From: Epithemia pelagica
Taxonomy: Eukaryota > Protista > Bacillariophyta
Direction: 5' to 3'
Length of the DNA: 64,000 bases
Assembly (NCBI GenBank): GCA_946965045.2
Contig: OX337228.1
Span: 5,022,001 to 5,086,000 of the forward strand
The notes under the pieces were generated by a model that was given only the letters and a program-made list of their open reading frames with translations, searched no databases and was not told where the DNA came from. The translations under genes and the position numbers were made by a program. This document shows, in pieces, positions 1-23,417 of this stretch; position 1 is the stretch's first letter; every line of letters begins with the position of its first letter.

Positions 1-3000
1 TATCTGGCTTGCCCAGACTAGATTTCCTGAGTAAAAGGCCGCGTTTGCAATCCTCACAATCTTGTAGAGCTTCGAAAACGAGTTATAGACTTGATGGGTT
101 TCACGAGAGCCGCCCCGAAGTGGCGGTATGTCTCGTTTTCCCTCAATGGAGTTGATGTTCCGAACGGCTCTTAGAAGCGTAATCATTGGTCGGGTTACAT
201 GAATTGTCACCTACACCATAAAAGGAAGAAAACTTAGAGATGCCAAAGTTTCCAAACCCAATATATGGAGTCATCCTTACCTTGCACACAACAAACAAGA
301 AAACAATCGAAAGAACAAGAATTATGACTGCGTCAATAATGGCTAACCGATCAAGGTCACCATACATCGTTTCTTCGACCTCTTCGAATGACCGCCGAAT
401 ATCTCGGGCGAAGTTGACGATTGCTACCGAATACATGGTTTCTGTTCTTGTCGTGACTCCCATGTCGAGACGACTTGGGTCTAATGATGCGAGTATAGTT
501 TGGTTAACAGCAGCATATGCAGCCACCAATTCCTCCTCTTCTCCGTCCTTCGTTTGTCTGGTGAATGTTGCCAAGCCATGTTGGCCTGCCTTCATCGACG
601 CTAGGACGCCCTTCTCAAATCCATCCTTGTCCTGGGGACGATTGCCGTGATTCTCGAATAACTCATCCGTGATTTTCGAAGAATTCCATGTCTTTGATTT
701 ATTCGTTCCCACAACAACATCGCCTTCGTATATATCAATGCCAGGTGTTACAAGAAACGATATGGGAAAACTCAGAGAATGGAATGCTTCTTCAAGCAGT
801 TTGTGTGGATAGTCTAAGAGCATCACTCCCACAAAATCACCATCAATGGGGTTAACAACAGGAGTTGCGATGCTCAACCCCACTGGACCTGACGGGCCAA
901 ACAAGTATGGTGCTGTCATGTGTAACGTGCTTGATTTTCGTGTTGTACTATACCAATCACGGCAACGTGGGTCGAACCCGTATTTTCCTTCGGGACAAAG
1001 CTCCGGTGCGATCAAAAATGCTTTATTTCCTTCGTCGGAAACAAAGAAAGAAGTGGTTGAATGAACATGGGAGCAACCAGTGAACCCACTAAACATTCCA
1101 TCTGCTTCAAATCCAATGAAACTTCCAAGTATTTGCCTCTCATATCCAGCGGCATTGCGGTAATTAAAAAGAGGAAACTCAACGACAGCCAGAGCGGATG
1201 AAACCCGAAGTCGGTCGTAAGTTGTCTCGAACCCTGCGGCGTTTGCACCCTTTTCCGCCCCAGGTAGTTCAGATGCATTATAATTCCAGATCGTTTCTTC
1301 AGGTGAGGCAGGGAAACTGGTGACATTTAGACGACCCCCTGTGAGGGGATCCATATCTAGTTCCAACACTGAGTAGAATCTCGCTTGCCTACGGCGTGAT
1401 TCGTGTCGGTCAAACTCTTCGGTGCAAGACCTGATGGGCTCAAAGGTATCGTCCCAATCACATGGACATTGATACGCGTCAGATAACAAAAGGTCACACT
1501 TGTAAATATCGGACGATTTGCATTCGTCTGATGCAGTCTGGAGTTCAGTGAACGAATCGGCTCTAGGAACTGCACCAAAATGGAGCCAGGAAGCCATGCG
1601 CGCGATCCAGTACAGATCGCGCCCCGGAGAAGCTAGAATCATACCGACCAATGTTGCCTTCGACATCACAATCGATTCATAGGCTTGCATCTCAAGGTCA
1701 TACGAAACCTGGTTTAAATCGTCAACCCACGCTGGAACGGTATCGATCATTGCTTGAGTGACGATAGCTGTAATGATAGTATTTGTCACCAAGAGTGGAA
1801 TGACAATAAGCAACACAATCCAGCAAAACAGGCGAGAGCGATAGACTTCCCTCCCGCCTTCGAGATCTTTAGGTCCTTCTTCGGGTAAACTAGCAACAAC
1901 TGGCCCTACATGTTTCTTTGGAGGTGCAGGAAACACTGTGTTTGAGAATGCCTTCAAAGCCTTCTGTTCATTAACTGTGGTAGAAACAGGTTGATCAGGC
2001 TTCGCCTCTTCATCATGATTCCCTTTCTCCTCATTGGGTTCCGAGGATGGGCCACTATTACAGTCTTCGGGTTCTGTGGAAGGAGTGTTAGCAGTGATGC
2101 TTGATCGAATGGATTTGTGCACTGACGCAGTTGTATACAGCTGTTGAAAATCGCTGTGCCATGTAAGTATGTTCCGAATCTCGTTTGCTTCCGACTCAGC
2201 GACAGAGGATGCGCCTCCACCGCTAAATCCAGTGATCATGGACCGGAACTCTTCCACCAGCTCTGTGATTTCTGTTCTTGGGGAGCAACGCACTGTGGCT
2301 GTGAGCGCAACTTCGTCTTCTAGTTGAAGACCTCCAGAACGTGTATCTCCATGGTTCACTATGCGCCACGAAACCGTTTCCATCCACAGCAAAGGCTGGG
2401 TTAAGAAACGTGCTACGCACCAAAGCATCAGAAGAATGAAAAACATTCCAAACAGCGCTATTCCTGTTGCAGCAAAGGATCCCTTCAACACGTCACTATC
2501 AATGGAACTCTCGAACTGTTCAATAGGAGCGTAGGCATCCAAGCCTACAACCTGGACGGCCAATGCGTAAGGGGCGTAGTTGGGGTCGAACTGCGATGGA
2601 GGATATGGAAGAGGATAAGCAGTTGCGACACCATAGAAGCACTCGCGCGTAGTATCCTCAGCCACGGCAGCAAGAGTCTCATTCGTCCATTTTGTCCTCA
2701 GGAGGGCCTCGTAGCTGTCTCTGATGGCCGCGAACGATTGGCTTGAAATTATTCCCAAATCTGACCAGGTCACGTTAATACTATTTCCATTTGATACGTT
2801 CACGCCACTCGTTGAATGAAGTGAATCCGACAGGACACGACCATCAGCAAAACTGAGCACTCCCCATTCTGAATGGTCATAAAGCCTAGATTTAATCAGG
2901 TTTTCGTCCAGGTCGGGCATTGCAATATCAACATAAGCAACGCCAATAAGTGCCCCAGATCTAAGAAAGAGATGAAACCAATAAGACCTCGAGGAAAACA

Positions 3001-4098
3001 ACAATCAGACAGGAGGACACGCATATGAACTTACTTTCGATCAAAGATTGCTTTACAAACCGTCGTAATGGACTCGTTGAAGCCAACTTCTTTGTGAGGT
3101 CCAAACCAATACACTTCGTTGCGATGCGTTACAGCTTCTCGAAACCATTCTCGTTCCACAGGGTTGTAGTCTCTGCCACGAACAATAGAGTTTTTGGGGT
3201 GGCATCTTGCAATTTCTTCTTCTGATGCTAGTGGTTCTCCAGTGATTGTATTGTTCAAAGTTCGTAGCCATTCACATCCTTGGGACTCATATGTCAAGTT
3301 CAGCCCATTACGATAAACCCCAGGGTAGGAGACCGTCGCACCGGCTCCGGAGTTGAAAAAGTGAACTCCCATGAAAAAAATATCTATGTTTGCCTCATGC
3401 AGTGGTCTTAGTAAAATGGCAATGTCACCTGACTTTTCATGGAGACCCTTGGCCGTAGAAGTCGGTTTGACCACTCCACCAGTAGAGACATCATTGTGCG
3501 CTTCTGTACAATTTGGATAATAGGCCAACGAAATGGGTTCTCTTACGGTTGGGTCACATTGTCCTTGCATAAAGAAGGCCCCGGTGGAAAACGAGACAAA
3601 AAGCTTGGCCTGTTCAAGCCACTTGGTACTGCGCCCTGGAAAGACAAAAGCAAAATTGTCATCCGTGACATCCCTGTTTATCATCCATTCAAGCGGCGCT
3701 GGATCAACGTCGAGCGGGTATACGTTGCGCTGAGAATCAATGTCAAAGAAGGGTACGAAAAGATCGTCCTCCCAGCCGCTATCGGGGTACCCAGAGATTC
3801 GATCCATTGTGATTTCCACCACTTGTTGCACTACACCATCAAAATTTTCTTTTAACTTCGAAAAAGTTTCCGCAGTTGTTTTTGTTGTAGATATCATGCT
3901 GGAATGGATCTGATCCTTCATGACCTTACTTGAACGCTCTTTGACCAAATTTCCAGCGGCGTTCAACATGATGATTGACACAATTACAACGAGCGTCAAG
4001 GTGATAAAAGTAACCGAGCCGAAACTGGTCAATAGCTGGCGCCTCAAGGAATAGTGTTGCTTTAGGCATGTCTTTTGAAGTAGCCTACCAGGTCCCAT
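1..4098 (-). CDS. Large membrane receptor-like protein with two TM-Cache-like-TM-HAMP-like modules; 3' end runs off the window
   Basis: Exons 4098-3035, 2960-281 and 210-<1 are joined in frame by GT-AG introns 3034-2961 (74 bp) and 280-211 (70 bp), giving 1318 codons with no stop. There are four hydrophobic segments (e.g. LTSFGSVTFITLTLVVIVSIIML, LFCWIVLLIVIPLLVTNTIITAIV). Cache-like motifs are YNPVEREWF...YWFGPH and FDPRCRDWY...HMTAPY. HAMP-like segments follow the TMs (FLTQPLLWM, VTRPMITLL). Confidence 0.8.
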
Positions 4099-5672: not shown

Positions 5673-8600
5673 ATGCAGCCAGTCCAATACGTTGCGAAGC
5701 ATGCATTCCAGGGAGATATTGCCCAATCACAGCTGAGTCTCACTCCTGGAGCCACTGTCTTGGCTAAGCCGAATCAAACAGGTGCTTGGTGGTGGGGAAC
5801 CTGCAACGGACGGGACGGATGGTTTCCACCCACCTACGTGGCACCTGCGCCTCCGCAGCAACCCATGCCGGCCATATCCATGCAACAGCAGATGCAACAG
5901 GCCTCGTTTGCATCTTCGGTCCAACAGCAACAACGACCGGCCGCAACTTCGGCAATACCCAATGCCCATGGTCTTCCAACGGCAGCTGGATATAGTCAGG
6001 GCATGGCTCAGCCTCATCACCAGGCTAGCGTTGCAGCCTTTCAGCCCATTTCCAGTCAGCCACCACAACAGATGTATGCACCGCAGGATCCGTTTGCTGG
6101 ATTGTCCAACATGTCCTCGCAGCCGTCTGCCTCAAGTTCACCCTTGCCTTCCATGTCGGGTGGTGTCAGTCTTCCACCTCCCGAGGAACTTTCGGCTGTT
6201 CCTTCCTCTTTGTCCGTCGCAAGTGACCTGTCGCCTCCTAATGCCTCCGCTGCTTCTACAAATGCAGGGACTGCCCCATCGCGAATCAGTCCCAATCCTT
6301 CTCCCCGTGACCACCAGATGGGACCCAAAGCGGGTTCCAAATCAGGCAGTACGAAGTCTACCTATTCCGATTCCAAGAGCTCCAGTAGCCCCAAGACTTT
6401 TTCGACTACTCCACAGTCAGTATCCTCAAAGCCCCAAGCTTCGTCGTCGAAACAAGGGACAAAAGTGGTTTCTCCGTCCTCCAGTGCCTTTGAAGATGCC
6501 GAATCACGTTTTGCTGGCTCCGCAGTAGCTTCTGCAGAGGGTAAACCTCCTCAGGCTCCAAGTACCATTTCCAAGGAAGAAGACGATGCGCGGAGACTTC
6601 GTGCTCAAGAAGAATCCCGACAAAAGGCACAGATTCGGAAAGACAAAGCGGTATCACGTCAGCCAACAGATTTCTCTGACTCCTCAAGTGGTATCGGGTC
6701 AAGTGGGGTAACAATGACTGTCGAGTCGGAAGCTGCTAACACGATGAGTGACCAAACGCAAGCTCGGTTCAACCCATATGAGTTCCTGTCAGGATCTGGA
6801 AAGCTACCCGATCGAAAGTTTTCCCCTGTTTTTCGTGTTCCACCGTTTTGGGCCATGATGAACCTGAATACCTACATTCAGCAGAAACCAGTCCCCGAAG
6901 ACAAACTCAAGGAAAGAGCGTCCATGTATGAACAGCTGGCAAGAGCTTTGAGTTTCGTTGGATATGTTTGCGCAGAGACGAATGAAGCGTCAAGGTCAGG
7001 GAGAGGCCGGTATGCCAACAAGCGCGAGAATCCCCTCGCGTATATGGCTAACAATCATATGGCCTGCGAAGCCTGCATCAAACTCATCTCGTTGCTCCCT
7101 CATTCAGCGGGTGCATCCGGTCAAGTTTTGGATGGTCTCTTTATGAACTTTCTGAATGTGTTTGTTTCTTTAATGGAAAATGTCCAACCGAATCAGCAGC
7201 TGGTTCTACCAGGAGGATGGCAGCAACCGGAATACACTTACCTCTGTTTGTACGTTATTCGAAATTGTGGAAACAATAAGTGGAGTTTCACAATCTGTAA
7301 TACGGGCCGAGATGGTCTCCAGTACCATCCAGCCAGCTTTGACAACGAAACAGGCCGCGAGTTGAAGCAGCTCGCAATGACCATTTGGGACATTCCTGGT
7401 GAGCGTCTCATGGATTCCACGTTCTGGACATTGCTTTTCCGACTTCAGGTCTATCCATCACGAAAGAACAACGCAGCCTTTGTCTATACGAAGCTTTTAC
7501 CTGCTTTGAACTCAAGACCTCTTCGTTCGAACTTGGATCAAGGCCCGGCTGAATACCTTGAAGTTCCTGGAACCATTCCGGCACAATCATACCATCCATT
7601 GGCACTGCTTGCCCTCACGTCTTCACCAGCACCGGGCTGTCGGTCATCTAAGTATTCAACGTTGCTTGTGATGAAAGCCGCCGTGGATCTTACCTTTTGT
7701 GAGATTGAGAAGGCTACTTCGTCATCCATGGACCCCGAAGACACGCGTATTCTGAAATTGACAGGAAGAAACCTGGCAAATTTTGCTTCCACAATAAATC
7801 CAAATAGCGTCGGTGACAACAGCCTGGGGGCTTCGTTGTCGGACACCTGGGATTTACTGGACAATCTCTTGAAGAAGATAAACTTCTCAGCGTCGAAACC
7901 GGTTGATCAATATAACCATGGCCTTTCGGCCAATGCGCTGACCGACGACTTTGCAAAGGGTCAGATTGTGTCGCTCGCCACAGGGCCTGGATCGGCGGCA
8001 TTTCCCCTTTTCGGTCGACTTCGACGAGATAACTATGCGCAGACGACGAAGGGTTTGATGGGTGAACCTCGACAAGACCCGATCCTTATCCCAGCTGTTC
8101 TCACCGACGCTGAGCTTCCTCCAGTTGCCACAGACTTCATGACAGCTTCGTCTTACTTACAGAGGATCGCAGATGCATGCAGTTTGCTTCTCCAACAAAG
8201 AAGGCTTATCAAAAATTCACCGGCGTTTGCTGCATCAGCAGCACAGTATGCCCTTACCACAGTTCTTCCGATGCCCAATGCGGATCCCAAATATTGCTTT
8301 TGGCGAAAGAACAAAATGAGACGTGAAACACAGCTGAACTTATTGTTTCTTATCAGACGAGTTTGTCGTATCTACTCTGCGGCAACATCTCGCGTTCAAC
8401 AGTCTCGTGGCTTGATTGCCATAAGGTCTACAGCGTTTGCGTGTGCTGCTTGCGTAGCTGATGCAATTTGTCGTGTCGTTGCGACAGACGACCCGAGCAC
8501 ATTTGCACTTCACTTTTCAGGACAGTGCGAAGGACCAACACAGCCTTTCGGTATTGACGCAGGAGCATACGACACTCTTGGTGCAAATTTGCCCATGTAT

Positions 8601-11600
8601 GACCCCAACATGTGCTCTCTCCGATTTCAATGCCTTGACTACATGAGAGGATTGTCCATGAACATGGATGGAACCCAGAAGAGCACTATTTTCAATTTTG
8701 ATAAATCCCTGTCGCCGACACCGGGTGATTTGGTGTTGATTGATCAATTGGCCATTCAATTGGCTTTACAAAGACCATTCCCTAAAACCGAGGAATCCAT
8801 GATGACCTATGCGGCCAATCTCATTTCGGGTTGCAATGGATCTATCATTGAGGTGCTTCCAGAGTTTGAGTATTTCCGTGACATCGTTTTCCATTTCAAG
8901 CATGCTGTCTCGGGAAAAGCTCAGTCTGCAGAGGTACCTGACAGCCACACTTGGTTGGCTTCCGATGCTACACTCAAATGGGACTTGAGGCGAAAATCGA
9001 AGGAAGACCCTGTTTTGGTCTACCAAGTGACGGCATTCCAGGGTCATCCACAAGACTTCGTAGAACGAATAGCCCAACAGGAAACAAAATCAAAGAACCC
9101 TTTTGCGGGTTTTGTGGCCCTTTTCTCTTCAAAGACTGTGGTGGAGAGATCGCGTTTGTCATCTGCGGATCCCAGTACGGTTGTAAATTCCTGCGGTGAG
9201 AAATTCCAGAATAAACGAGCGAAGCCTGTATCTGTTAGAAACGAAGACGATGTTCTCCACTTGGACAACAAAGAGTTGCCAACTTTTGGGAATCTGTTGA
9301 CGCCATCAGATTCGGAGAGGTTCATTCAGTTCCTCACGGTCCCATACATTCGTATTCCTCTTATCCTTGACTTTTTCGCCAATGGTGACCCAACTCGTCT
9401 TTCTGCTCTGAGGACAAAATCACTACAGCTCATTGTTGACGCTGCACTCTTCGAGCCCGGGCGATGGAAACCAGCAGATTTCTTAGATTACATTGAGGAG
9501 GTCCCCGTCGTTGACTTTGAAAGGTTGGAAGCATTACTTGCAACTCCTCATGGAACGCTGTTTAATGAAATCGCGAAATCGCCGGATGTTCTAACGAGTT
9601 GTATCGTTAAAATATTGGAGCGTGCACTTGATATGGATGTTGGGCGGTACACGAGGAAGTCCTCTTCGGGTCCTTTGATTCTCTACGCTGTGCGACTCGC
9701 CGTTCGACTTGAAGGCTACATGAAATATGCTCTGGCAAAGTGCCGTCCAGGGAAACCCAGGCCTCGTGGCCTAGAGACGTTGGATAACATTAAAGTGGAA
9801 ACGGCACTTAAAAAGATTCGTGGAATGATTGACGCACAGGCAATCCCAACGCTGGAGTATTGGATTGATCCCTCGCGAACAAAAGATGTTGACATCGCTT
9901 GTCTTACACATGCTCATCTTTTGTACCTGTTCAAGAACTATGACTATGAGGATCTGGATTTCCGAGCCGTTTCGATCATAATGTCATCACAGGTGTTTTT
10001 GACCATCAACAATAGGTTCAGCAGCAAAGTGTACGATGATCTGCAAGACAACTCCAATCCCACCCACCCTCCACCGTCTATTCAAATTGCACAATCTGAG
10101 ATTTTTGATATCATTCAAAGCCACCGGTACAATGTCCTCCGTTTTATCAGAGAGAAATCCAAGGATGGCGACCTTGCAATGGAAGCCGTGGTTCGAATTG
10201 CGACTGGAACCGGAACTCGGGAGAACTCAGATATTGAATTGAAACAACGCCATTGGCAGAGTATTGGTCATCCCACTTGCTACGGAAGGTTTGTGCCTGA
10301 TACCGAGGATGAAAAACTTCGCGATGGGTCGTACCGGAAACCTGTGGAAGGCCAAACCTATGAGGAATGGATGCTACAGGTCACAACGAAGGCAGTTGGT
10401 ATTGAAGTTAATCTTCAACTGAGTGACTTTACTTTGCAAAACCACAAGATGGCATTGCTGGATCCCCAGATAATGGAAGATGCTGACTTCGCCGAAACCA
10501 GGCGGATTGCCTTGAAGGATGCATCGGATATTGCCTGTGCAGAAGTAATGCACACAACTAATCGCTACTGGTGGCGCCTAGTTGGAAGACGATATGATGT
10601 GCTTTCGTGGAGTCCTGATCAACGGAACTTCTATGACACCAAAGGAGCACGTAACCCGAATCATTCTCGCAAGTTTCCCGGAGGACTGCGTGGCGGGGAG
10701 AAGTGGATCGTTGATATATTGAAGGACAAGTTACCACTGATACTTCCTGAGGTCGATCTCTTTATTTCATCGAATGATCATTCGGATGAAGCTTTTGCCG
10801 TCCTGTCAGGCTGGCTACCAAACAAACGTAGTGACCACTCAATGCTCACTCATACTCTAAAGGAGGTGGTAGTGTGGCAGCATCCACCAGCCCTTTCTAT
10901 TTTCAACGTTGTAGAATATGGGCGCCGTCACATCCGAGTATTGGAGTACACGTCCAATCTATCGACATGTCTACACGAAGTCAGCAGTGGTGAACCTTAC
11001 CCCGACCGTGTTGCGGGTATCCTTTCTCTCTCCGCTGGTGTTCCCATGACCACAGTGACACCTTCGTCATCTCTTCTAGTATCGAGGGCCTTGTCTGCAG
11101 ATATCGGTGTTCAAACGTTCGTGCCCCCAAGATTCCTCGAGGGGCTAATCCCGACAGCTTTGGTTGAAAATTACGTTTTCTGGCAAAACGAAGACGATGA
11201 TATTGTCGGATATGAGAAGGAAACGAAGAGTCAAGAAGATGAGGAGAGCGACGAGAAGGACATCATTGACAATGCAGGCTCTTCACCAGATGATGACAGG
11301 CCTTGTACACGGCTACGAATCAAGCTCACCAAAGAGAGTTTCGACAAAACAGGCTTTTGTAATTCCTCGGCGGAAGCTCTTGTTCAGAGGATCCCAGTCA
11401 TTGGAACTGACCAGGAAGTTGAACGCATTGACTCAAACAGGACAACTCATGTGTTGCTTAACGTTATGACAGCACCTCCATCGTCGCTGTTGAAGAGAAT
11501 AGGGATGCTACTGGCTCGTTTGGACAACTTAGCTCACGTTCTAGTTTGGAGCACGGAGACCGTCAAGACGGCACATGGTGCAGCTTCGATTGACTTGATT

Positions 11601-14600
11601 GAGCTTCCACGGATCAATCTAGCATTCAAAGCAAAAGAGGTCCAACTGATCGACGGGACTAAGGAGAGGCGTCTTTACAGCAATGATTACGATGGGCTGT
11701 ACATAGCAACTTCGACAGAAGCACGTGAGATGGCAGAACGCTTACTTGGTTCCATCTCGCATTTCATTGTCCTACAAAATGCTGATAAAGACCTGTTCGT
11801 TCTCCTGCCGAGTTGTGCCCTTCCCCGAAGACTACATGTTGATGGGTCCCACCTCTCCGTACAAGTCATTCTCGATAGGCGAAACAGGGAATGGATAGGA
11901 AACATCGGAGAAGTTCGATCATACTTGTACCCAATCCATAACTCAAGGTCCTTCTTGGTCACACCATCGTTGGCTTCCTCACTTTACCTGATGTTGATGT
12001 ATTTTATCACGGGGTCTTACTCAGACGTCTTCAAGATGGTAGAATCATGCGTCAGTGAAGAGCTGAGCCCCGAAGAGCAGCAAATTTTTAACCAGCTTGA
12101 GTTCTTAGGAAACGATTTCCATCCGGATGCTCATGCATGTCGCCTGAAGTTGTCAGTGGTAACTGTGGGACTTGGTGCCGAGTCGACAATGCGATGTCCG
12201 TGGAGTATCACTGAAGAAATGGAAGAGTATGTGAAGAAACACGGTTATGTGTCATCAGCCTGTCGTCTAACGACTGAGGAAGAGATGTTGCTGCTTCAGC
12301 TATGCCGACCAAGTGCCCAGGGACGGCTTTCATTGACCCTTCTAAACAGGAAGGCTTTTGTCGGTGCTGTGAGGAGTTTGGGCTCACTTGCGCCAGACAA
12401 AACGTTGTCTGTGAAATTAGGAAAAGAAAAGCCACCCGTGGTGGAAAACTTTGATTTTGGTGCTGATTTTACAATTATTGAGAATCCTAAGAAGACGATG
12501 GTTTCTGCGAAGCTTTTCGGCGCAGCATATAGTAGACCCGAAGACGACGACGTTGCCTATGGGGGACTCAAGGCGTTAGAATTCATCAACAACGCCGTCT
12601 CATCCGGAGTCGAGATGACTTCGTCGCGTCACGGGTTCCCCTTGTTGTACGACCTCTTGACAGAAACTGTTGCGTTCAAACTCCACCCTAGTGACAAAAC
12701 GTTCAATTGGGGTCGGATGCTGTTTCGCCTCCTACCGCCGTCAGATTTCAAAACTCTTTCCGCAGAAATGTCGATCCTACGAATCCTTGCCGAGAATAGG
12801 CCCATTGCATCACACCCAGCCATACCAAGGTTTCAGATTGAAAGTGGAATGAACAGACTGAAAGGGATGTTTCACGGAAAGGATGCCGTAAGCAAATTGA
12901 TCGAACAATCACATACATTTATGAGCCAGGAAGGGGTCAGGGCAATGATCAAAAACTCTAGCGTCTTTCAAGAGTCACTTCCAAGATCCACAATGATTCT
13001 GGGGCGTCCGGAATCTTATTCTCAACATAGACTCTGGGTGGTTCCTCGAATCTCAGATTATTCGCAGTCGAAGTTTTATCTGGATATCCAAAATTGTGCA
13101 GCAGTGAACATTCCCCTCAAGCAGCTTCAAGCGTTTGCATCCAAGCCTCTCAAGCCGATAAAACTCAGTTCCTATGTGACTTACTTGACTCGGATGGAAC
13201 TTGGACAGGGCTCTGTCTCATCAGCCCTTCCTTTTGATGTATCTGGAGATCGGGTTTCACGAACACACTGTTCTCGTGCCACGATGCAACGAGTTGCCGA
13301 CGATGTCTTTAAGTATTCCCAGAAAGCAAACACCGAGACCACCCCCACACTCATAGGCTTCGCACCAGCTGATATTGATTCTTTCCATACGAATGGAGTC
13401 ACTTTGAGTAAGGCGAACGCGCAACTGAACAAGCTTGTGAAGGCACTCAATCAAGCCATGGAATTCGATCGAAAGTCGCTGTGGAATCTGATGAATCGGG
13501 CCTTGGCCATTGCAACAAGTGATGAACGAAGCGACACTCCAGGAGCTGGTGGACCAAACGGCGAGGTGAACTTTTTGCGATTCAGGCTTGGTCAGGTTGG
13601 TGAAAGAGAGCCAGCTTCATGGTTTGAACTGCTTGTGGCGTCGACACTTTCTACTGTTGCCGAACATGACATCCGTTCGCTTAATCCTCACATGTCGGGG
13701 ATTGCATATAAAACTGTCACGAGTCTTACAGTTGTAGCGATGTTGACATCGATCCGTATCAGCCAGACTCATCGGGCTTTATCCAGTCTCTCGAAATTAC
13801 TCTTTCTTTTGAAACGAGTAAGTAATCAAAACGAATTCAAAGAACAGTCGAGGATTTGTCAAGAGATCAAGCTTCAGGCATCAAAGGTTGCTTCAGACGT
13901 TGCAAACGAACGACACTTCATGCAAGTCAGCTCGGACGGGAACTTCATTGAATTTGACCCACGATTCCTTGTTTTTGAATTCACTTACTCTTTGATGCTT
14001 CGGAAGAGCCAAGTACTCTTGGTGAACAAACTGATGAGCGCTATGAACAGCAAGCAGTCGATGTGTCATCAAATGATCATGGGTGCAGGGAAGACGACCG
14101 TTGTCACGCCGCTTCTAGCTCTCATGCTGGCTGACGGGAAGTCGCTCGTTACTCAAGTTGTGCCTCATGCCCTGCTGGACTTCTCACGTGGAGTGATGAG
14201 AGAAAAATTTGCTGCAGTTGTTCGAAAGCCAGTGTTTACTTTTGCTTTCAGTAGAGGTACAACAATCACAAAAGATCTTTACCTTAAGCTTTGCAAAGCC
14301 CGGGACAGCAGAGCAGTGATCTGCGCGACTCCGACCAGTGTCAAGTCATTCATGTTGAAGTTTGTCGAAATGATGAAGGTTCTAGAAGAGAAGAAGTTTG
14401 GTAGTGCCCGACGGAAGGTGCAAAGCGGTGGTCTATTTGGCGCCTTCTCCCTATCTGCAATTGCGAAAAGATTCCGAGATTCTGCGGAAATTATTGAGGC
14501 TGATGTCAACCCACAAGAAGTTTACTATGGAGTCGAAATTTTGAAACTTTTCAGAAACGGTGCTCTGTTGCTGGACGAAGTTGATCTCATCTTACACCCA

Positions 14601-17600
14601 CTCAAATCAGAACTGAATTGGCCAGTGGGCAACAAAGATCCGATTGACTTTTCGCGTGGGAAACTTGGTGCAGGGCTGCGATGGGACTTGTTCTGGCACT
14701 TGCTTGACGGAATATTCTTCTCCACGACTGGGAAAATGTCTGTTTCGTTCAAGGATAGCAGAGAGGCTCTTACATTACTTGACCAGATATCAAATGTGAT
14801 TCGTAATGGCATAGCTCAGAAACAAATGCAACAGACTCCGCATCTTGTTCTATTGAACAGGAAGTTCTACCATTCGGAACTAAAACCGTTAATGGCACGT
14901 TGGCAGCTGCTTTATCTTCGGAACAAGCGCTTGCCGTCGGTTGAGGACCAACATCTGGTGTCTTACATGGTAAACGGACCAATCAAGGACAAAAAGGCTG
15001 CTTCCGCTGTTCATGTTTCACTGGACGATGAGTACATGAAGATGCTGAACTTAAGCCATGACCTCTTACGTAATTTCCTTCCTCATGTTCTGAGCAAGAT
15101 CAACCGTGTTTCATTTGGTTTGCTATCCAAGACGGACCTCAAGCAAGCCCTCGAGTCAGATCCAAATGTGTCTCTTGCCCGAAGGCTGGCGGCAATTCCC
15201 TTTGTCGGAAAGGACATTCCCAGTCGTGCAAGTCAGTTCTCCCACCCGGATATTGTGATCGGTTTAACAACCATGGCGTATCGCTATGAAGGGCTCCGGT
15301 TCAGCGACTTTGAGAACGTGCTTTTTGCTCTTCGAGAGCAGCTGGATTCTGAATTCGGTCCCTACCACAAGCGACCAGCGTCATTACTTTACAAGTCTTG
15401 GGTCGAGGAAGCTGGGGGCAAAGTCAGAGGTCCTAGAGAAGGTGAAGAGTCTGGTGATAATGACTTGGAAGCATCATTCTTCAGGTCCCCGATTAACCGT
15501 CCTGGTGTCCGTGGATCCGATGACATTTGGCCTCTGCATCTGCTTGATCTCAAGGACGAGCAGCACATGAGCGTGACCTACAGCTTGCTTCGCTTGATTC
15601 CACAAGTAATCAACTACTACTTGAACAGTTTTGTTTTCCCTTTGGTAATGGAACACCATCATGAAAAGATCAGTGCTTCGGGACAGGACCTCGGAGGCGA
15701 AATGCTTTTTGGCAGACGTGTTGGTTTCTCTGGGACACCAAGCGATCTCTTGCCCGAAGAACTCGGCCAGTGTCAATACGACGAAGGTGTTGACGGTCAG
15801 ATCATTCATTATCTGACATCCACTGCGATGGTGTCTCACCGCATGCTCTCTGACAACTGGTCGGTGAAGGGGCTTTTGGATGACATCGCACACGCCGATC
15901 CACCATTTCACGTTTTGCTTGATTGTGGAGCGCTTGTCACAGGGATGAGCAACTATGACGTAGCCAAGTACCTGCTCACAAACGGCCTTCGAAAAGAGAT
16001 TGATGGGGTTGTATTCTTGGATCACAAGGATAGAAAGATGATATTGATGCGCCAAGGAATGAATGTTGTTCGCCTTAATCAGTCTGGAATTCCTCCGCAC
16101 CGACGTTTCTCGTTTTATGACCAGATTCATACCACTGGGATGGATATTCATCAGTGTATCGATGCCAGAGCTGCGCTCACCCTTGGAAAAGATATGACTT
16201 TCAGAGATTATGCACAAGGAGCGTTCCGTATGCGAGGAATCGGTAAGGGACAAACAATCGAATTGTTTGTGATCCCTGAGGTAATGAAGCTCGTGAATGA
16301 CCAGAAATCGCGGTCCTCTCCAACAGCAGTTGTTCCTCAGAATCATCCCGTCTCCCCGGCTTCTCTTGGAGGATACGGCTCAGACCTGCTGTCGATGGCC
16401 GGCACCGGCAATCCGGGTGCCTACCAAAACCAGGCCACGGGATCACCACAACAGTTGCTTGTAGATGTTGCAGCCTGGTTGACAGTGAATGGTATGAAAA
16501 GTGAGAATATGCAGTTTCGAATGCTTTGTCATCAGAGTATCGACAACGTTTCAAGAAAGAGAGCCTACAATGTATTGACCTCGAACTTCCGCGAACTCAC
16601 CCAGGTAGCGTTTGCCGGGCGGGCAAAAGAGTTTGTTCCGAAAACTCAGTCTAGATCCCACTCTGATATCGAAGGGGACCTTGACATGGACATCGGTGCG
16701 ACCGACCTGTTGTCAGATGATGCTGAGGCTATCCGTAGTGTCGTAGATGCCTCGGGAACTTCAAAATCCAGTAAAACGACTGTTGGAATTGAAGTAATTC
16801 AGAAATGCCTGGATATTCTTGCGGAACGCCTTGATTTCACAGTACCAAACAGTATTCCTGTACCCGTGCCTCTCTCAGAAACTCTACGCAACAGTATTAT
16901 GCGAAGACAGGATTTTATCCGAAACGACTATGACAAGGCAGTCGTCGATAAAATTTTGATGGTTTTGGTGAATTCAGAAGGCCCAAGTAAGCGGAAGGGT
17001 GAAGCATCTCATCCTGAAGAAGATGAAGACGTGGATGTGAATATTCAGAAGGAACAGGTTGCTGAAGAGGAGGTTCTGAAAGAACAGGTGAGTAGAATCA
17101 TTCTCTTGCATTGTGTTTCATGTGGCGGCTCTAATGGCTCATCAAATTTAGGAAGAGGAGGAGGAGGAAGAAGAAGAAGAGGAGGAAGAAGAGGAGGAAG
17201 AAGAAGTGGTAAAAGAAATTGCAAGGAACAAAAAGTACTCTAGGGATGGCGAAAACCCTAAAGCCTGGCCAGTCAAGAGTCTCTCGGTCACTCGGCGGGA
17301 TGATGACCCAGACTTTGCGAAACGCAGTAAAGAAGCTACGGAACGAGGCGAGGAAAAAGTTCTGTCATGGGAGAAGTTTTTCTATCCAGCATCGGACTTT
17401 TCAGTCAAGAATTATGTTTTTGGAAAAGGGGTGTCTCTGGAATTTCCCGATTACCTACATGTATCTAACAACTACTACGACAAAAAATGGAACATGAAGA
17501 CACACAGGCGTTTGAAGAATGTGATCGTTACGATGGACTTCTTCCCTTCCGAGTCGGCTCTTCGAGAGATTGCAGCTGTTGGAAAAGCATTTACAGCAGA

Positions 17601-19266
17601 ACAGGAACACGTCTTGAAGCGTGCGTTTGTTGGAGCCGACGGAAACCACTCGGGGAAGATATCGGTGGAAGAGCTAAGGGAAGTTCTTCGCGCCGTTGAC
17701 GTTGATGTTGAAGGAGAAGACGGGGACAAGTTCTTCGAACAGATTCCTGATATTCAGTCTCGCGCCATCACATTTGATGAGTTGAAGCATTATCTTACTC
17801 AGCGCATGTTCTACCGAGTTCAAGCAGGTCGATACTACGTGATTCTTTCGTTGTTTGAAGCCGAATGTTTGCGTGCTGTAATGCATCAACAATCTGCTCT
17901 GCCTCTTGTACCAGGAAAAGATGCAGCTGTGGCAATCAGAACAGAGAAGACAGTCCTTGATGCGACCTTTGGATACAAGCGAGCTCAGAGTTTCCAAGAT
18001 GCCACAGCTCAAGCCTGTTTCCGGTTCATAGATAGTCAGGTCAATTACCAACCGAGAGAGCTCACATTGTTGTTGCGTTCTCTTCAGAACAACCAACTCG
18101 AGAAGCGGTACAATTATTTCGTCGAAGTCAGGAGCAACCGGCGAAGAAAGCAAGTTGACCCCTCCACAGCGTCGATTTCAAAAATATTTATTACCGCTGA
18201 CGAACACCACCTTCTCAATTACAAGATTGCAGCTGGACGAATGACAGCACTGCTGAAATCAAGAGGAATGTATCCACGAGATGCTTTCGTCGCAATCGAC
18301 GGTGACAGGGATGGATTACTCAGCGTCGAAGATCTGCGTCGAGGTATGCAGTGGCTCGGACTAAACCTAGACGCATCACTTCTTGGCGGGTTCATGAAAG
18401 AGGTTGACAAAGACAACGACGGTTTCATCAACCTTGATGAGTTCAAAGGAGCCGTCGGTTTTGATGAAGGTTCTGAGAATCTTCAAGATATGGGGACATT
18501 CAATGGCGGCATGCCCTTACCTCCAATGCCGACTGCGGATCAAGAAAAACAGAAGGTTCAGATTCCTGCAGCTGTCCTTGGTTCCATTAAGGTGAAAGTA
18601 AAGAAGGTTTCACGGTTCACTTTGGTTTGGAACAGCCAAGGAAGTATGAGTCGCTACAAGACCAGTATATGGGATTCCAATGTCAGTAGTGGTATTAAGC
18701 AAAACAAGGCATCGATCTGCCTAGGTCACTTTGCTGGAAGTGGCTACGAGAACCCCAATAAGGACAGCCAGGAACGTCTCTTCCTTGAAGTAACTGATAC
18801 CTCTGGTAGTTGGATGGGTGGGAGTAGTTGGCTTCCTCACGTATTGGATCGTTTCATGCCGCATCCAGCTCGATTCCGACTTGCTTGGTCTTTGACGCAT
18901 GGGGCAAACCCTTTTTATGCCTGGGAGCCTGTCCCTCCTGGTGACGAGTTCGTTGCTCTCGGGTTTATCGGTTCGAAGGACGACAAGCAACCAAGCGTAA
19001 ACTGCATGCGCTGTATTCCAAGAAGCTGGTGCAAAGAAAGTGCGCATATTCAAAAGATATGGGATGATAGTGGTTCATCGGGACGCGCTGGAAGCATTTG
19101 GATTTTCAACTCGTTGAACCTGGTGGGTTTTGTGAGTGGAAGTGACCCTCCAAGACGCACGCCTTTCGACCTTGTTTCAAGGCGCTTTTTCATGAAAGAT
19201 TATACTGACATCAGATCAGACAAGGTTGTGGCTACACCGGGTGGATATCAAGGCCCCAAAGCATAG
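5673..19266 (+). CDS. Giant ~4509-aa protein: SH3 + low-complexity linker + DUF3638/DUF3645-type SF2 (SecA-like) ATPase + poly-Glu + EF-hands + Vps62-like repeats
   Basis: Exon 5673-17087 (3805 codons), GT-AG intron 17088-17151 (64 bp), exon 17152-19266 in frame with the 686-aa ORF. SH3: YVAKHAF...WWWGTCNGRDGWFPPTYV. ATPase motifs: QMIMGAGKTT, LLDEVD, GFSGT, TGMDI, QGAFRMRG. DUF3645-like: AIPFVGKDIPSRASQFSHPD. EF loops: DGNHSGKISVEE, DGDRDGLLSVED, DKDNDGFINLDE. Vps62-like: WEPVPPGDEFVALG, IWDDSGSSGRAGSIW. Confidence 0.88.
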
Positions 19267-19517
19267 GAACCGATTAACTTTAAGAAACATAGATTTTTAT
19301 GCTGTCGTTTTCAGGCTTTCCATTTTCCATTATAGACGAAGCAGTCCCAATTCCCAAAATCCATCGAACTGAGTTTTCTCGCGAGTCGGGGAAGCAAACG
19401 GTTGATTAACTGTCAGTAGTATATGTCTGCCAATATCATTGTAGGTATAATTGTCAGTAGACTATAAAATATACCATGCGAAATGCGAATACCTTTATCC
19501 TTTGTCGCCATTACACG

Positions 19518-22500
19518 TTATGCTTTCACTTTGGCCAGGAAAGAAAATTCTACGATCTTGAAGGCATCATTGGCATCTTTCAAGATGGCATCAGTTCCGT
19601 CAATACACACGAGAGTTCCTTCCAAACCGACTTCATTGCCACCAGTGACGAGAACGGGATCATGTTCAGCTGGAACCACCATGGATATGTCGTGGACGGC
19701 AACATTTTCAGTTGAACCGTCTTCGAGCTCCACCACAATTTTGCTCGGATGAATCTCCTTCACCGATCCCTTCTTTTCACTTGGACCCTTTAAGTTAATA
19801 CAAACGCGTTCCATCAACCAACCCGGACGCTCCTCATTATCCGGCAAATCGTGCTCCACTTCACTCGCCGTTTGTTGCTCTCGTTTGACAGAAACACCAC
19901 TGTTATGATTGTTCGTCGACGAGGAAGAAGACTCTTCTTTCACGGTCGCATTTCCTTTGGAGGAACTAGCGCCGTTGGTGTCAAAGTCCTTGGGCTCCTT
20001 TACAACAGGTTGTTCTTGCGTCGGTGGTGGAGGAGGGGCACCCCATTCTCCTTCGGCTTGATTATTTGATGACGATCCCCAATCATCATCGTCATCACCG
20101 TCTTGGTCGTTGTTGGTGGCACCCCATCCGTCATTTTCTTTCGAAGTGTCAACATTATCTTGGTCAATCGAACCTCCGGGACGCCATACCTCATCTCCAC
20201 CTCCATCTGCGTCAAGGCCACCACTCGGATGTTTGGGAGTGGCACCTCCATGCATCGGCGTTTGACCAGCTGCAACAAAGGGTGTCGTTGGAGCCATGAC
20301 CGTGGGGTTCACCGGGGCATTCGACGATGACTGATTCTCTGTAGCTCCAAATTTATCACCAACAACGTGAACACGTTCATGTGTGACTGTCACTTTCTTT
20401 AATCGAGCATGAAGCTCCACCTGGACATGTGTTCCCGTCACATCGCACACCGTGCCGATGAATCCTTTCCAGCTACCAGCCTGGATACGAACAGTCTTGC
20501 CGATAAGTCCGTCATCCCGTTTCCGTGCTGGACCTCGGCTGTTTTGGTTGGACTGTGGTGTCCATGGCGACTGCCCACCATCCGCTCCTCCAGCCCTGTT
20601 TTGAGTTCGAGAACCGGCCAGAACACAACTTCGACTCTTCACAACGAATATTCCTGCGTGCTCCAATCTTGTTTGAGAATGCAAAAACAGCTGCGAACGA
20701 TTCATACGCTTGATTGTGGCAGCCTTTCCTTTGTGACGTCCCTCCACGACATTTACAGTGTCGCCACATCGAATTTGATTTCCTTGTACATCCAATGCCA
20801 CGGCCTTGTTGGACATGGTGTTTTTCTTACCCAACAACTCTTCTGGTCGAACTTCGCGAGCAATACCATGATTGTTCACCACGGTGAAATCCTCTCGACC
20901 GACACGGACAATCACACCAACTTCATTCACCGATCCTCCGCCACTCAGGACGACTAAATCATAGAGCTCGAAACTATTTAACTTGTCTTGGCCAGAAGCA
21001 ACTTCGGCGGTCTCTCGTAGTTGCGCCAATCGTACGGTGATTTGTTTGTTGGTAACATCGGTCAACACAATGGCCGTAAAATCGTTCGACGATGAACCAC
21101 CACCTTCCATTTTATCCACGGCCACGACGACTCCTGTTTCGTTGGCATACCGGCCGTCCATAACCTTGACATGAGTGCCTTCAGGAATATGCTTCCGCAC
21201 TTGACTCATCAAAAACTCGATTTCTCCCGTGAGCGAAGCGTCGGCACTTGTGGGTTGAACTTTGACTGTGGATCCATCCAAACTCACAATCTTTCCCTGT
21301 ACTCCAATTAAGTCTCCCTCAACGACTTCAATTGTATCTCCTATCAACAATCCACCAACTTTTTGTGCTTGCTTGTCAAAGCCTGTCTTATTTTGTAGTT
21401 CCGCCAACTCGTCCAGGAGGGATGCGGCAATTTTGGAACCTTCATTTTCCGCCCCTTCGTCATTGTCACCGCCTCCTGCCTTGCGTCGTTGAAATCGTTG
21501 TAATTCATCCAGTGTAGGTGGGTCTTCGTCTGTGCAGGGTTTGACCATCGAACCAACTGTCATTTCTTTTAGCAAATACCCATCTTCATAGAAATTGCCT
21601 TCAAAAACGTAACAGTAGGCATTGAGACCAGGGAATAGTTGGCGTAAAATATTGTGTTTGCCCATGGCCTTTAGTTCTTGTGGGCTAAAAAACTTTTGGG
21701 GAGGCCGCACGGTTCGTCTTCTCATGCGTGCTTCTTCGGCTGACAAATCACCCAAGGTTAGATCAAGACGAGGCACGCATTGGACAATACATCGCAATCC
21801 GGAATCTTTCACTTCCTTCACCAAGGCCAAGTCTCCCTTGTAATGTCCCCGCGTGAGACGGACCCATTCGTTTTTCTGGACGGGTTTCTTTTTGGATGTG
21901 ACCGTCATGACCGTGGTCATGTCTCCAATAGGTACCAATCGCATCGAGTACTGAAGCAATCCTCGGACATTTTGAATGGCTTCCATGACGGCTGGTTCCG
22001 AAAAGGCCTCGACATAAATTTTTCCTTTGGACTGTGCGGCAATGGCCCCGGTGATCCCCAAGGGTCTATTCTGACGAGCAAAAGCGACCGCCTTGTTCAT
22101 GAGCTGGAGGACCATATCTTGTTCCTTGCCCGTGGCACAGGAGATCATCCAAAAAGACGGATCATTGACAGAGGGCACCAGACTTTGTTGTGCGACAGCC
22201 GTATAGGCCTCCGGTCCTCCTTCATCGTCGACCACATCGCGGTGCATTTCCATGGGAACAGGTGGTGGTGGTGCATTGGGTGCTGTGGACGCAGCCAAAG
22301 TTGCCGAAGCGGCCGAAAGGTTGCCCCGTGCGGCGGCATTACCCGTAGCAGTGGCACTTTTACCTCCACTGGTCCTGGCCGGTGGCACATGTCGTGCATC
22401 CGGTCGAATCCTTCCATGATTCATGGGTCGTCGATTTTGCATTCGATGACGTTGTTCAATATCACGTGCCATTTCGGCGGCCGTTCGTTCCAACATGGCT

Positions 22501-22961
22501 CCTCCGGCTTGAGCACGACGTCGATCTTGCAATTTAATAAGTTCTAGTGCTTCGCGATCCATGCCTTCGCCATCGTCTCCACCAGCTCGTCCACCACCAC
22601 GGCCGCGGCGTTCATGCTCTTCTTCCTCTTCTTCATCACTGGCTTCCGCTTCGAGTTCAAAAAAGGAGGATGCTTTGGGACGTTTCCGTTGTTTCTCGCT
22701 TCCACCACCACCAGCCTTTCGTTTGCTAGTATTGGGCTTCGCTTTTGCTGGAGTCTCTTCTTCCTCCTCCTCATCGTCATCGTCGTCATCATCGTCGTCG
22801 TCGGAACTCAAATTGGCCGTGTTTTTCGAAGTGCTCGTGTTGCGACCTCCAGTATTGTTCATGGTACGTCCTCCCTGTTCCTCTTCCTCCGAGTCATCTT
22901 CCTCTTCATCTTCGGAATCGACATACGAGTTGGTCGGCGGTCGAAAGAATTTCTTGGACAT
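19518..22961 (-). CDS. SPT5: Transcription elongation factor SPT5 (~1147 aa)
   Basis: Acidic N-terminus, NGN domain (FWMISCATGKEQ...KGKIYVEA), several KOW repeats (IGDTIEVVEGDLIGVQGKIV, GDTVNVVEGRHKG, GKTVRIQAGSWKGFIG). Start placed at the ATG of MSKKFF (22961). Confidence 0.96.
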   Translation of the reverse strand: MSKKFFRPPTNSYVDSEDEEEDDSEEEEQGGRTMNNTGGRNTSTSKNTANLSSDDDDDDDDDDEEEEEETPAKAKPNTSKRKAGGGGSEKQRKRPKASSFFELEAEASDEEEEEEHERRGRGGGRAGGDDGEGMDREALELIKLQDRRRAQAGGAMLERTAAEMARDIEQRHRMQNRRPMNHGRIRPDARHVPPARTSGGKSATATGNAAARGNLSAASATLAASTAPNAPPPPVPMEMHRDVVDDEGGPEAYTAVAQQSLVPSVNDPSFWMISCATGKEQDMVLQLMNKAVAFARQNRPLGITGAIAAQSKGKIYVEAFSEPAVMEAIQNVRGLLQYSMRLVPIGDMTTVMTVTSKKKPVQKNEWVRLTRGHYKGDLALVKEVKDSGLRCIVQCVPRLDLTLGDLSAEEARMRRRTVRPPQKFFSPQELKAMGKHNILRQLFPGLNAYCYVFEGNFYEDGYLLKEMTVGSMVKPCTDEDPPTLDELQRFQRRKAGGGDNDEGAENEGSKIAASLLDELAELQNKTGFDKQAQKVGGLLIGDTIEVVEGDLIGVQGKIVSLDGSTVKVQPTSADASLTGEIEFLMSQVRKHIPEGTHVKVMDGRYANETGVVVAVDKMEGGGSSSNDFTAIVLTDVTNKQITVRLAQLRETAEVASGQDKLNSFELYDLVVLSGGGSVNEVGVIVRVGREDFTVVNNHGIAREVRPEELLGKKNTMSNKAVALDVQGNQIRCGDTVNVVEGRHKGKAATIKRMNRSQLFLHSQTRLEHAGIFVVKSRSCVLAGSRTQNRAGGADGGQSPWTPQSNQNSRGPARKRDDGLIGKTVRIQAGSWKGFIGTVCDVTGTHVQVELHARLKKVTVTHERVHVVGDKFGATENQSSSNAPVNPTVMAPTTPFVAAGQTPMHGGATPKHPSGGLDADGGGDEVWRPGGSIDQDNVDTSKENDGWGATNNDQDGDDDDDWGSSSNNQAEGEWGAPPPPPTQEQPVVKEPKDFDTNGASSSKGNATVKEESSSSSTNNHNSGVSVKREQQTASEVEHDLPDNEERPGWLMERVCINLKGPSEKKGSVKEIHPSKIVVELEDGSTENVAVHDISMVVPAEHDPVLVTGGNEVGLEGTLVCIDGTDAILKDANDAFKIVEFSFLAKVKA

Positions 22962-23417
22962 GGTGGTAGAACTGGAAACACAAGTGCTTTTGGTGATTTG
23001 GTGATGCAATCCAGGTTTTGGGAATGGTGCTATGATCGTCTCCTCGCTCGGGTCTGGAAGCTATGGACGATGTTGACGAGAGTTGTTCTCGTTGTGTGTA
23101 AGGTGCAGTATGGGTTTTCATTTTTCATCCAAAAAAGGGGGTGGTGGTAGTTTTTTTGGAAATGATGCCCTTTAACTTTGAGGGGGCGTATTTGAAAAAC
23201 TCGCAAAAAAGCCAATATTCGACGAAGAAAACAAAGACGACGACGACTCGGCAGTACAGCCGCAGCGAAACCAAAAGACACCCACATTTTTGTAACGAGT
23301 TGTTGCCTCGCAGAGTCTGCAAGAGAGATAGACTGAATTGCGTCATTGGACACATTTTTGTCAATGCAATCGACTTGAAACCAACATCTCCTTTCGTGAC
23401 AAGAACCAAGATTGACC

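Follow-up and report, generated by a model that had tools for sequence, protein, structure and literature searches.

What kind of machine is encoded by a single giant gene of a diatom that joins an ATPase motor to calcium-sensing and adaptor-type modules? The gene lies on the + strand of a 64,000-nucleotide (nt) stretch of nuclear DNA from Epithemia pelagica (GenBank assembly GCA_946965045.2, contig OX337228.1, positions 5,022,001 to 5,086,000), which we call the window and whose coordinates are used throughout. A preliminary description of this DNA had read the product as a SecA-like motor, set in one cytosolic chain with an SH3 domain, three EF-hand loops and Vps62-like repeats, and had proposed it as an undescribed system. 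We find a two-exon gene that encodes a soluble, cytosolic protein of 4,509 amino acids (aa). By its sequence the protein belongs to the pan-eukaryotic DUF3638 (PF12340)/DUF3645 (PF12359) family, and its core, as modeled, is a bona fide motor of helicase superfamily 2 (SF2) with DEAD/SecA-like geometry. The protein falls outside the SecA family, and its resemblance to SecA is no more specific than its resemblance to ordinary RNA helicases.

The evidence for a motor begins with five ATPase motifs, which had been placed at 14070, 14574, 15723, 16134 and 16215 and called intact; rereading the sequence and recomputing the positions upheld this, and at the sequence level the motifs are far beyond chance. 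The first RecA-like domain (RecA1) carries a Q81-type glutamine, Walker A (QMIMGAGKT, 14070-14096), Walker B (DEVD, 14574-14585) and stretches resembling motifs Ia/Ib (VVP..LL.F.R and TPTS.KS), and the second (RecA2) carries motif III (GFSGT, 15723-15737), motif V (TGMDI, 16134-16148) and motif VI (QGAFRMRG, 16215-16238). The arrangement sought in an SF2 enzyme, a pair of RecA-like domains bearing motifs I, Ia, II, III, V and VI in that order, is present. In alignment A1, which comprises 50 homologous cores at 41-50% identity, the ATP-site residues and motifs Ia/Ib, III, V and VI are invariant; the invariant core residues include G105/G107/K108/T109/T110 and D269/E270/D272 in motifs I and II, and S654/G655/T656, T788/T789/G790/D792 and Q816/G817/R820/R822 in motifs III, V and VI. 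An AlphaFold2 model built on A1 (mb5f15788d73b, covering aa 2700-3560) has a predicted local distance difference test (pLDDT) of 83.4 and a predicted template modeling score (pTM) of 0.81, and bears out the expectation that the core would model as tandem RecA folds. Its two RecA-like domains are of alpha/beta type and occupy model residues ~46-300 and ~628-848; between DEVD (269-272) and FSGT (653-656) the chain forms a mostly helical domain, with long strands leading in (282-291) and out (628-636). This inserted domain holds an invariant DUF3645 block (15177-15269), which the conservation profile ranks with the best-conserved parts of the protein, and both RecA1 (isoelectric point, pI, 9.6) and the insert (pI 8.9) are basic. 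The Pfam DUF3638 model matches at 8.7e-25 (87.8 bits, cut-off 31) and is followed in order by DUF3645 at 3.5e-12 (45.9 bits, cut-off 25).

Structural comparison of the modeled core returned a broad set of SF2 enzymes. The highest Z scores were 17.4-18.4 for the SecA motor, 17-18 for DEAD-box proteins, 16.5 for RIG-I, 16.3 for FANCM, 15.9-16.7 for Ino80 and 15.4-16.2 for DinG, and SecA is thus the best or co-best structural neighbor of the predicted motor. Foldseek ranked DinG, SecA, SRCAP/SWR1, Dicer and RIG-I/MDA5 at the top (E 4e-6 to 1e-3), and a shape search of the ESM Atlas returned the protein's own family first, followed by Snf2-type proteins and type I restriction R subunits. At the level of sequence the SecA interpretation fares less well. 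The five motifs, which had been taken as SecA signatures, are universal SF2 motifs, and the Pfam models SecA_DEAD, SecA_PP_bind and SecA_SW match none of the 50 members, as against weak matches to ResIII in 32 and to DEAD in 11 (best 8e-4). SecA_DEAD matches none of these members at E<=10, and SecA_SW has no Pfam match in aa 3549-3805 or in exon 2. The NCBIfam SecA models gave no match at E<=1, the sole notable NCBIfam match being an EF-hand-driven one to XopAW, and PADLOC gave none. Searches of the PDB by sequence with the single core sequence and with the A1 profile returned nothing meaningful. In hhalign comparisons with single sequences as templates, the A1 profile against full-length E. 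coli SecA gave a probability of 0.3, which is noise, and sub-profiles of RecA1 and RecA2 against SecA, UvrB, RhlE and DinG were all noise as well (probability <=10); because all of these comparisons lie at noise level, hhalign cannot rank the SF2 families.

These results bear on the reading closest to the preliminary description, in which the protein would be a Ca2+-regulated, membrane-associated motor that threads polypeptides in the manner of SecA, with the insert in the role of the preprotein-binding domain. On its side stand the structural matches and a shared topology, in which motifs II and III are separated by an entire inserted domain. The spacing of these motifs is 176 residues in E. 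coli SecA (which places its PPXD between DEVD209 and GMTGT389), ~380 in the family and 27 in RhlE. XPD/DinG helicases carry their Arch domain at the same site, and the insertion site is therefore not unique to SecA. Given the profile results, we regard a SecA-type threading motor as improbable, and polypeptide translocation and membrane association by the diatom protein are conjecture.

A second question is whether the motor and the calcium-sensing part belong to one protein at all. In the window, an open reading frame (ORF) of 3,856 codons runs from an ATG at 5673 to 17243, and a second ORF, in a different frame of the + strand, spans 17206-19266. The borders of the proposed intron are a donor CAG/GTGAGT at 17088 and an acceptor TTTAG/G at 17151, and excising its 64 nt moves the frame exactly from the first ORF to the second, which gives a joined product of 3,805 + 704 = 4,509 aa (~503 kDa, computed on the joined translation). 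A 287-nt metatranscriptome contig from a close relative (X3 record 11) tracks window positions 16849-17088 and then continues with in-frame GAA/GAG codons and no intron; its far side of the joint was not aligned letter by letter because the read alignment skipped the glutamate-codon repeat at 17144-17212. P0002, a transcript-derived protein of a related diatom whose core is 86% identical, ends in ...VLKEQEEEEEEEEE, that is, the spliced junction KEQ/EEEE. Finally, exon 2 is collinear (aa ~25-430) with the C-terminal parts of at least 85 of 120 listed homologues, which are the best 120 of 389 proteins found by a word-indexed search with the core and on which the domain tallies below are based. 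Within this set, the Ditylum brightwellii transcript protein P0012 is 58% identical to exon 2 over aa 24-693. RNA contigs also cover 17213-19303 in pieces.

One could suppose instead that the motor and the EF-hand/Vps62 protein are two separate genes, or that their union is an artefact of assembly or annotation, since the genome ORF call P0001 (91% identical; 3,819 aa) stops inside the intron, reading ...VLKEQVSVAV... into intron-like residues, and since read-through yields the 3,856-codon ORF described above. This supposition is scarcely credible: a canonical intron restores the frame, an RNA contig departs from the genome at the splice donor, a transcript protein shows the junction, and the fusion recurs in transcript-derived proteins of other species. 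Because the RNA contig, the P0002 junction and homologue collinearity are three independent lines, we treat the two exons as encoding one protein, as the preliminary description had it. The start codon is supported because P0001 and P0002 both align collinearly to exon 1 from residue 1. A 19-residue Kyte-Doolittle scan found no convincing membrane segment in the protein, which is therefore taken as soluble, in keeping with the earlier view of a cytosolic chain.

Other observations concern the transcript itself. An oligo-dT RNA-seq contig (18686-19303) extends through the end of exon 2 to a point 37 nt past the stop codon, which fits a short 3' untranslated region. Retention of the intron would give a 3,856-aa product lacking the EF-hand and Vps62-like modules and ending in an Arg/Gly-rich tail (GRGGGGRRRRGGRRGGRR), because the GAR codons of the polyglutamate run are then read in another frame. 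In the ORF calls of the related diatom contigs P0005, P0006 and P0015, 4-11 glutamate codons follow ...KEQ/LQE before unrelated residues begin, which suggests a splice donor located a few GAR codons downstream of its position in the window; this shift could reflect sliding of the intron within the repeat.

The features of the gene are collected in table 1. Among distant homologues, conservation extends from aa ~460-490 through all of exon 1 to exon-2 aa ~430. The conserved body of the family thus comprises a protease-fold-like module, a largely helical scaffold of ~1,950 aa, the SF2 ATPase and a family-wide EF-hand module, and the EF-hand module is part of this body rather than a diatom addition because conservation reaches so far into exon 2. 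Different lineages add different peripheral parts to this body, here the SH3 domain, the disordered linker and the Vps62-like end. The linker is not conserved beyond close diatoms, and no distant homologue aligns before aa ~460. No Pfam family was found at E<=10 in pieces of aa 440-2700 or in the post-motor piece, and feature searches of the ESM Atlas with aa 470-1400 and aa 1111-2699 gave no usable match. The scaffold region holds Cys836, Cys875 (in C-F-W) and, at aa 1190-1345, the most conserved block. The post-motor region runs from a variable stretch through a conserved, helical-looking block (W-L..N....E..Q) to an acidic tail.

Table 1. Features of the Epithemia pelagica DUF3638/DUF3645 gene, in window coordinates.
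Feature	Position	Strand	Basis and remarks
Exon 1	5673..17087	+	3,805 codons, start ATG to splice donor; uninterrupted ORF
SH3 domain, N-terminal, aa 8-58	5694..5846	+	Pfam SH3_2 6.3e-5, 23.0 bits (cut-off 21.8); SH3_9 0.0033
Low-complexity linker, aa 61-460	5853..7052	+	S 18%, A 12%, P 11%, Q 8%
First family-conserved module, aa 483-743	7119..7901	+	Beta-sheet lobe plus helices; AnkH/LegA15-like fold (predicted)
Conserved region of ~1,950 aa, no Pfam family	7902..13769	+	Modeled part (to aa 1110) mostly alpha-helical, scaffold-like
RecA-like domain 1, aa 2745-2999	13905..14669	+	Pfam DUF3638, model, invariant residues, structural matches
Inserted domain between motifs II and III, ~330 aa, mostly helical	14670..15650	+	Model, DUF3645, conservation 0.58-0.68
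RecA-like domain 2, aa 3327-3547	15651..16313	+	Invariant motifs, model, structural matches
Post-motor region, aa 3549-3805	16317..17087	+	Conservation; pI 4.8; no Pfam match
Intron	17088..17151	+	64 nt, phase 0, GTGAGT...TTTAG; sequence, RNA contig and P0002
Exon 2	17152..19266	+	704 codons plus stop; homologue collinearity and RNA contigs
18 Glu codons at start of exon 2	17152..17205	+	Sequence
EF-hand loop 1 (DGNHSGKISVEE)	17638..17673	+	Pfam EF-hand_6 and EF-hand_5 at exon-2 aa 155-181; loop pattern
EF-hand pair: DGDRDGLLSVED (18298-18333), DKDNDGFINLDE (18406-18441)	18298..18441	+	EF-hand_7 5.2e-17, exon-2 aa 376-434
Vps62-like C-terminal module	18556..19263	+	Pfam Vps62 3.5e-6, 26.1 bits; repeats in translation

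The SH3, EF-hand and Vps62-like modules that had been named from the sequence are real, as judged by Pfam matches above cut-offs, by the loop pattern and by the repeats. All three EF-hand loops are canonical 12-residue loops, with D/N/S at positions 1, 3 and 5, glycine at 6, a hydrophobic residue at 8 and an acidic one at 12, which is aspartate in the second loop. Pfam EF-hand families match exon 2 at 1e-18 to 1e-7, which marks the loops as predicted Ca2+ sites, and they are found in 67 of the 120 listed homologues. The Vps62 match (PF06101, exon-2 aa 469-641, cut-off 22.1) covers only positions 20-174 of the 541 in the profile, the Vps62-like module carries three repeats of the W..GS(G)...(S)IW type, and SH3 domains occur also in the homologues P0021, P0027 and P0039.

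The N-terminal part of the family body raises a separate possibility. We modeled aa 480-1110 on 27 sequences (pLDDT 77.5, pTM 0.51), and in this prediction aa 483-743 give a moderate match to the cysteine-protease-like domain of the Legionella proteins AnkH and LegA15; the remainder is helical with weak matches of the alpha-solenoid type. No sequence-level link to AnkH or LegA15 was found with the N-region profile A2 against the PDB. The AnkH domain adopts a cysteine-protease-like fold that is CE-clan-like, and its triad residues follow one another as His243, Asp258 and Cys324, of which the histidine opens a strand, the aspartate ends the next strand and the cysteine precedes a helix, the corresponding motifs being rGHa, D/NRg and GNCSW (PMC6712400). 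LegA15, in turn, is an atypical GTPase that uses Cys361 and Lys367 (PMC9757750). The diatom module carries PGGW, NTG (N543), YHP (H552), D-x-x-F-W (W585) and LY..LLP. In the family alignment, about one-third of members have Gly-His at the corresponding strand start, where the diatom protein has EYTY; at least 90% have the asparagine of NTG at the end of the next strand; and the invariant Trp585 opens the following helix, with Thr, Ala or Ser, never Cys, two positions before it. His552 is invariant, and the module contains no conserved cysteine. We infer, as a lead from the model, that aa 483-743 represent a protease-fold module whose nucleophile was lost, if it was ever present. A remote possibility is that the Legionella AnkH/LegA15 domain was derived from this module of eukaryotes.

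Several homologues bear the UniRef name "ubiquitinyl hydrolase 1," which suggests that the protein might be a deubiquitinase, with an N-terminal cysteine-protease module driven or gated by the ATPase. The CE-clan-like fold (PMC6712400), the Gly-His and Asn located where AnkH has His243 and Asp258, and a Cys875 that is retained in 26 of the 27 sequences, the exception having Ser, would all be compatible with this idea. However, Pfam detects no peptidase or deubiquitinase domain either in the diatom protein or in the homologues so named, and no paper backing the name appeared in the literature searched. The label is thus without domain support, and a deubiquitinase is in our judgment an improbable reading. 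The name may have been assigned automatically, by way of a PANTHER family. The idea of Cys875 as a nucleophile of the papain type was rejected because its surroundings are all-helical. Cys836 (8178-8180), Cys875-Phe-Trp (8295-8303) and the mostly conserved His946 (8508-8510) could form a metal site or an unrecognized active site.

What, then, might such a machine do? We tentatively favor, with somewhat less than an even chance of being right, a giant SF2 ATPase that clamps a polymer, is tuned by Ca2+ and is targeted by adaptor domains. On binding ATP, the two RecA domains would shut their cleft around a polymer, for which RNA or a different phosphate-rich chain is the likeliest candidate; the basic RecA1, the inserted domain and its invariant DUF3645 loop would hold this ligand. 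Hydrolysis would drive clamping, release or stepping and so move the giant scaffold relative to the ligand, and Ca2+ bound to the EF-hand module just after RecA2 would tune the ATPase cycle. The SH3 and Vps62-like modules would set the place and target of the machine, a role that PH, FYVE, WW, Ank, WWE, MIB_HERC2, RanBP2 zinc-finger and thioredoxin domains may take in relatives. To our knowledge, nearly all SF2 enzymes have a nucleic-acid-type ligand and SecA is the one SF2 motor that moves polypeptides; we favor a nucleic-acid-type ligand for this reason and because RecA1 and the insert are basic.

Several points weigh against this proposal. The Pfam tally contains no classical nucleic-acid-binding domain in the 120 listed homologues, and the best single structural match is to SecA, which moves polypeptides; a protein substrate stays a rival because of this lack of nucleic-acid-binding accessory domains and because of the SecA-like topology. 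The accessory domains point toward signaling by way of Ca2+, lipids, redox state, ubiquitin or poly-ADP-ribose, and not toward RNA biology. We infer the coupling of EF-hands to motor solely from adjacency and co-conservation, the literature searched contains no experiment on any DUF3638/DUF3645 member, and the models cover aa 480-1110 and 2700-3560 of the 4,509 aa.

The accessory repertoire also supports a different view, in which the protein is an ATP- and Ca2+-gated scaffold or switch that has no track and whose nucleotide state toggles a giant signaling or ubiquitin-pathway platform, similar in logic to the giant ATPase-containing E3 ligases. Across the 120 listed homologues, the accessory domains are thioredoxin-like (23), Vps62 (12), Laminin_G_3 (10), PH (8), zf-RanBP (7), MIB_HERC2 (7), WWE (6), SH3 (3), Ank (3), F5/8-C (3), RING (2) and UBA, ubiquitin, FYVE and WW (1 each), of which WWE, MIB_HERC2, zf-RanBP, RING, UBA and ubiquitin make up a repertoire typical of ubiquitin and poly-ADP-ribose signaling. 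Furthermore, the modeled ATPase core (aa 2700-3560) leaves ~3,600 of the 4,509 residues elsewhere in the chain, and much of this sequence is conserved. However, the substrate-contact-type motifs Ia/Ib and the whole insert are as conserved as the ATP site, which argues for a bound polymer, and Pfam finds no E3 or E2 catalytic domain in the diatom protein. We consider a trackless switch unlikely and retain the polymer-clamping ATPase as our tentative preference. Very improbable, in our estimate, is that the family is a Ca2+-gated machine with a SecA-like motor whose substrates are not nucleic acids but polypeptides, or protein assemblies linked to ubiquitin or membranes, with the insert as the substrate clamp. 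If a polypeptide-acting, Ca2+-gated machine were nevertheless true, it would be the first machine of the eukaryotic cytosol to work in the manner of SecA.

The family itself is widespread. The two Pfam families comprise proteins of protists and fungi. The 120 listed homologues, with E values from 0 to 1e-200, represent diatoms, Vitrella, Chromera, Prymnesium, Eutreptiella, Diplonema, Aureococcus, Amorphochlora and many contigs of marine eukaryotes. Orthologues from other diatoms reach identities of 91% and 86%, and relatives from alveolates, haptophytes, euglenozoans and rhizarians are 40-50% identical. Scans of 185,579 prokaryotic species genomes and of IMG/VR used two exact peptide patterns and thus report fairly close relatives only; IMG/VR gave no match, and the genomes gave one (L003; PABI01000099.1, 1-9947), a 9.9-kb contig in an Anaerolineaceae metagenome-assembled genome. 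This contig consists wholly of this gene at 44% identity, equals the homologue P0095 and is probably a mis-binned eukaryotic contig. The preliminary description had stated that no mechanism is established for DUF3638/DUF3645, and this agrees with the literature searched, which holds passing mentions only and nothing on function, substrate, structure or mechanism. DUF3638 appears there in gene-family expansions in microsporidia (PMC5423893), among new Tetrahymena genes with a mechanism that "remains undefined" (PMC12615304) and in a polymorphic candidate effector of Plasmodiophora (bioRxiv 10.64898/2026.10.14.759018). The term "undescribed system," on the other hand, is too strong, because the Pfam family is catalogued and orthologues of up to 91% identity are in public data. 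The gene is a member of a catalogued, uncharacterized family and not a new kind of system.

The interest of the locus lies in chains of about half a megadalton that are conserved across stramenopiles, alveolates, haptophytes, euglenozoans and rhizarians. The analysis yields a verified gene model, a definition of the family body, the parallel in insertion site with SecA and the lead of an AnkH/LegA15-like module, and it leaves the deubiquitinase label unsupported. The question is thereby narrowed to which polymer stimulates the ATPase and whether Ca2+ gates it.

As for its surroundings, the gene is followed by a convergent neighbor on the - strand (19521-23009) that encodes a complete SPT5 transcription elongation factor of 1,163 aa with NGN and KOW1-KOW7, and two long ORFs of 953 and 355 aa lie upstream on the - strand (143-4098).

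Comparison with known systems places the protein as follows. Relative to the DEAD-box proteins Dbp5/DDX19, DbpA, eIF4A and UAP56/Sub2, the diatom motor has DEVD for DEAD, SGT for SAT and the wide motif II-III gap where RhlE has ~27 aa, and Helicase_C has no Pfam match in any of the 50 members; the set of DEAD, SAT and above-threshold Pfam DEAD plus Helicase_C that defines DEAD-box membership is thus absent. With SecA (PDB 5k9t, 3bxz), which gave the best Z scores cited above, it shares a two-RecA fold over ~335 aa (root-mean-square deviation 3.8-4.0, 14-15% identity) and the motifs DEVD, G-x-[ST]-G-T, a motif V of the G-x-D-I type and an Arg-rich motif VI. It differs in an almost entirely helical insert that has no SecA_PP_bind match, as opposed to the alpha/beta PPXD of SecA; in having no detectable PPXD, helical scaffold/wing or C-terminal linker; and in being a eukaryotic, cytosolic chain of this size without translocon context. 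The likeness of aa 483-743 to the structures of AnkH (6mca) and LegA15/AnkD (7kj6, 7xql, 7ew8) is one of fold, whereas the Cys nucleophile is absent from the DUF3638/DUF3645 family and the His from the diatom protein. The closest comparison is with that family itself, of which only subsets possess an SH3 domain, a long low-complexity linker or a Vps62-like end, and with which the diatom protein shares both Pfam models above their cut-offs and a collinear body from aa ~480 to exon-2 aa ~430.

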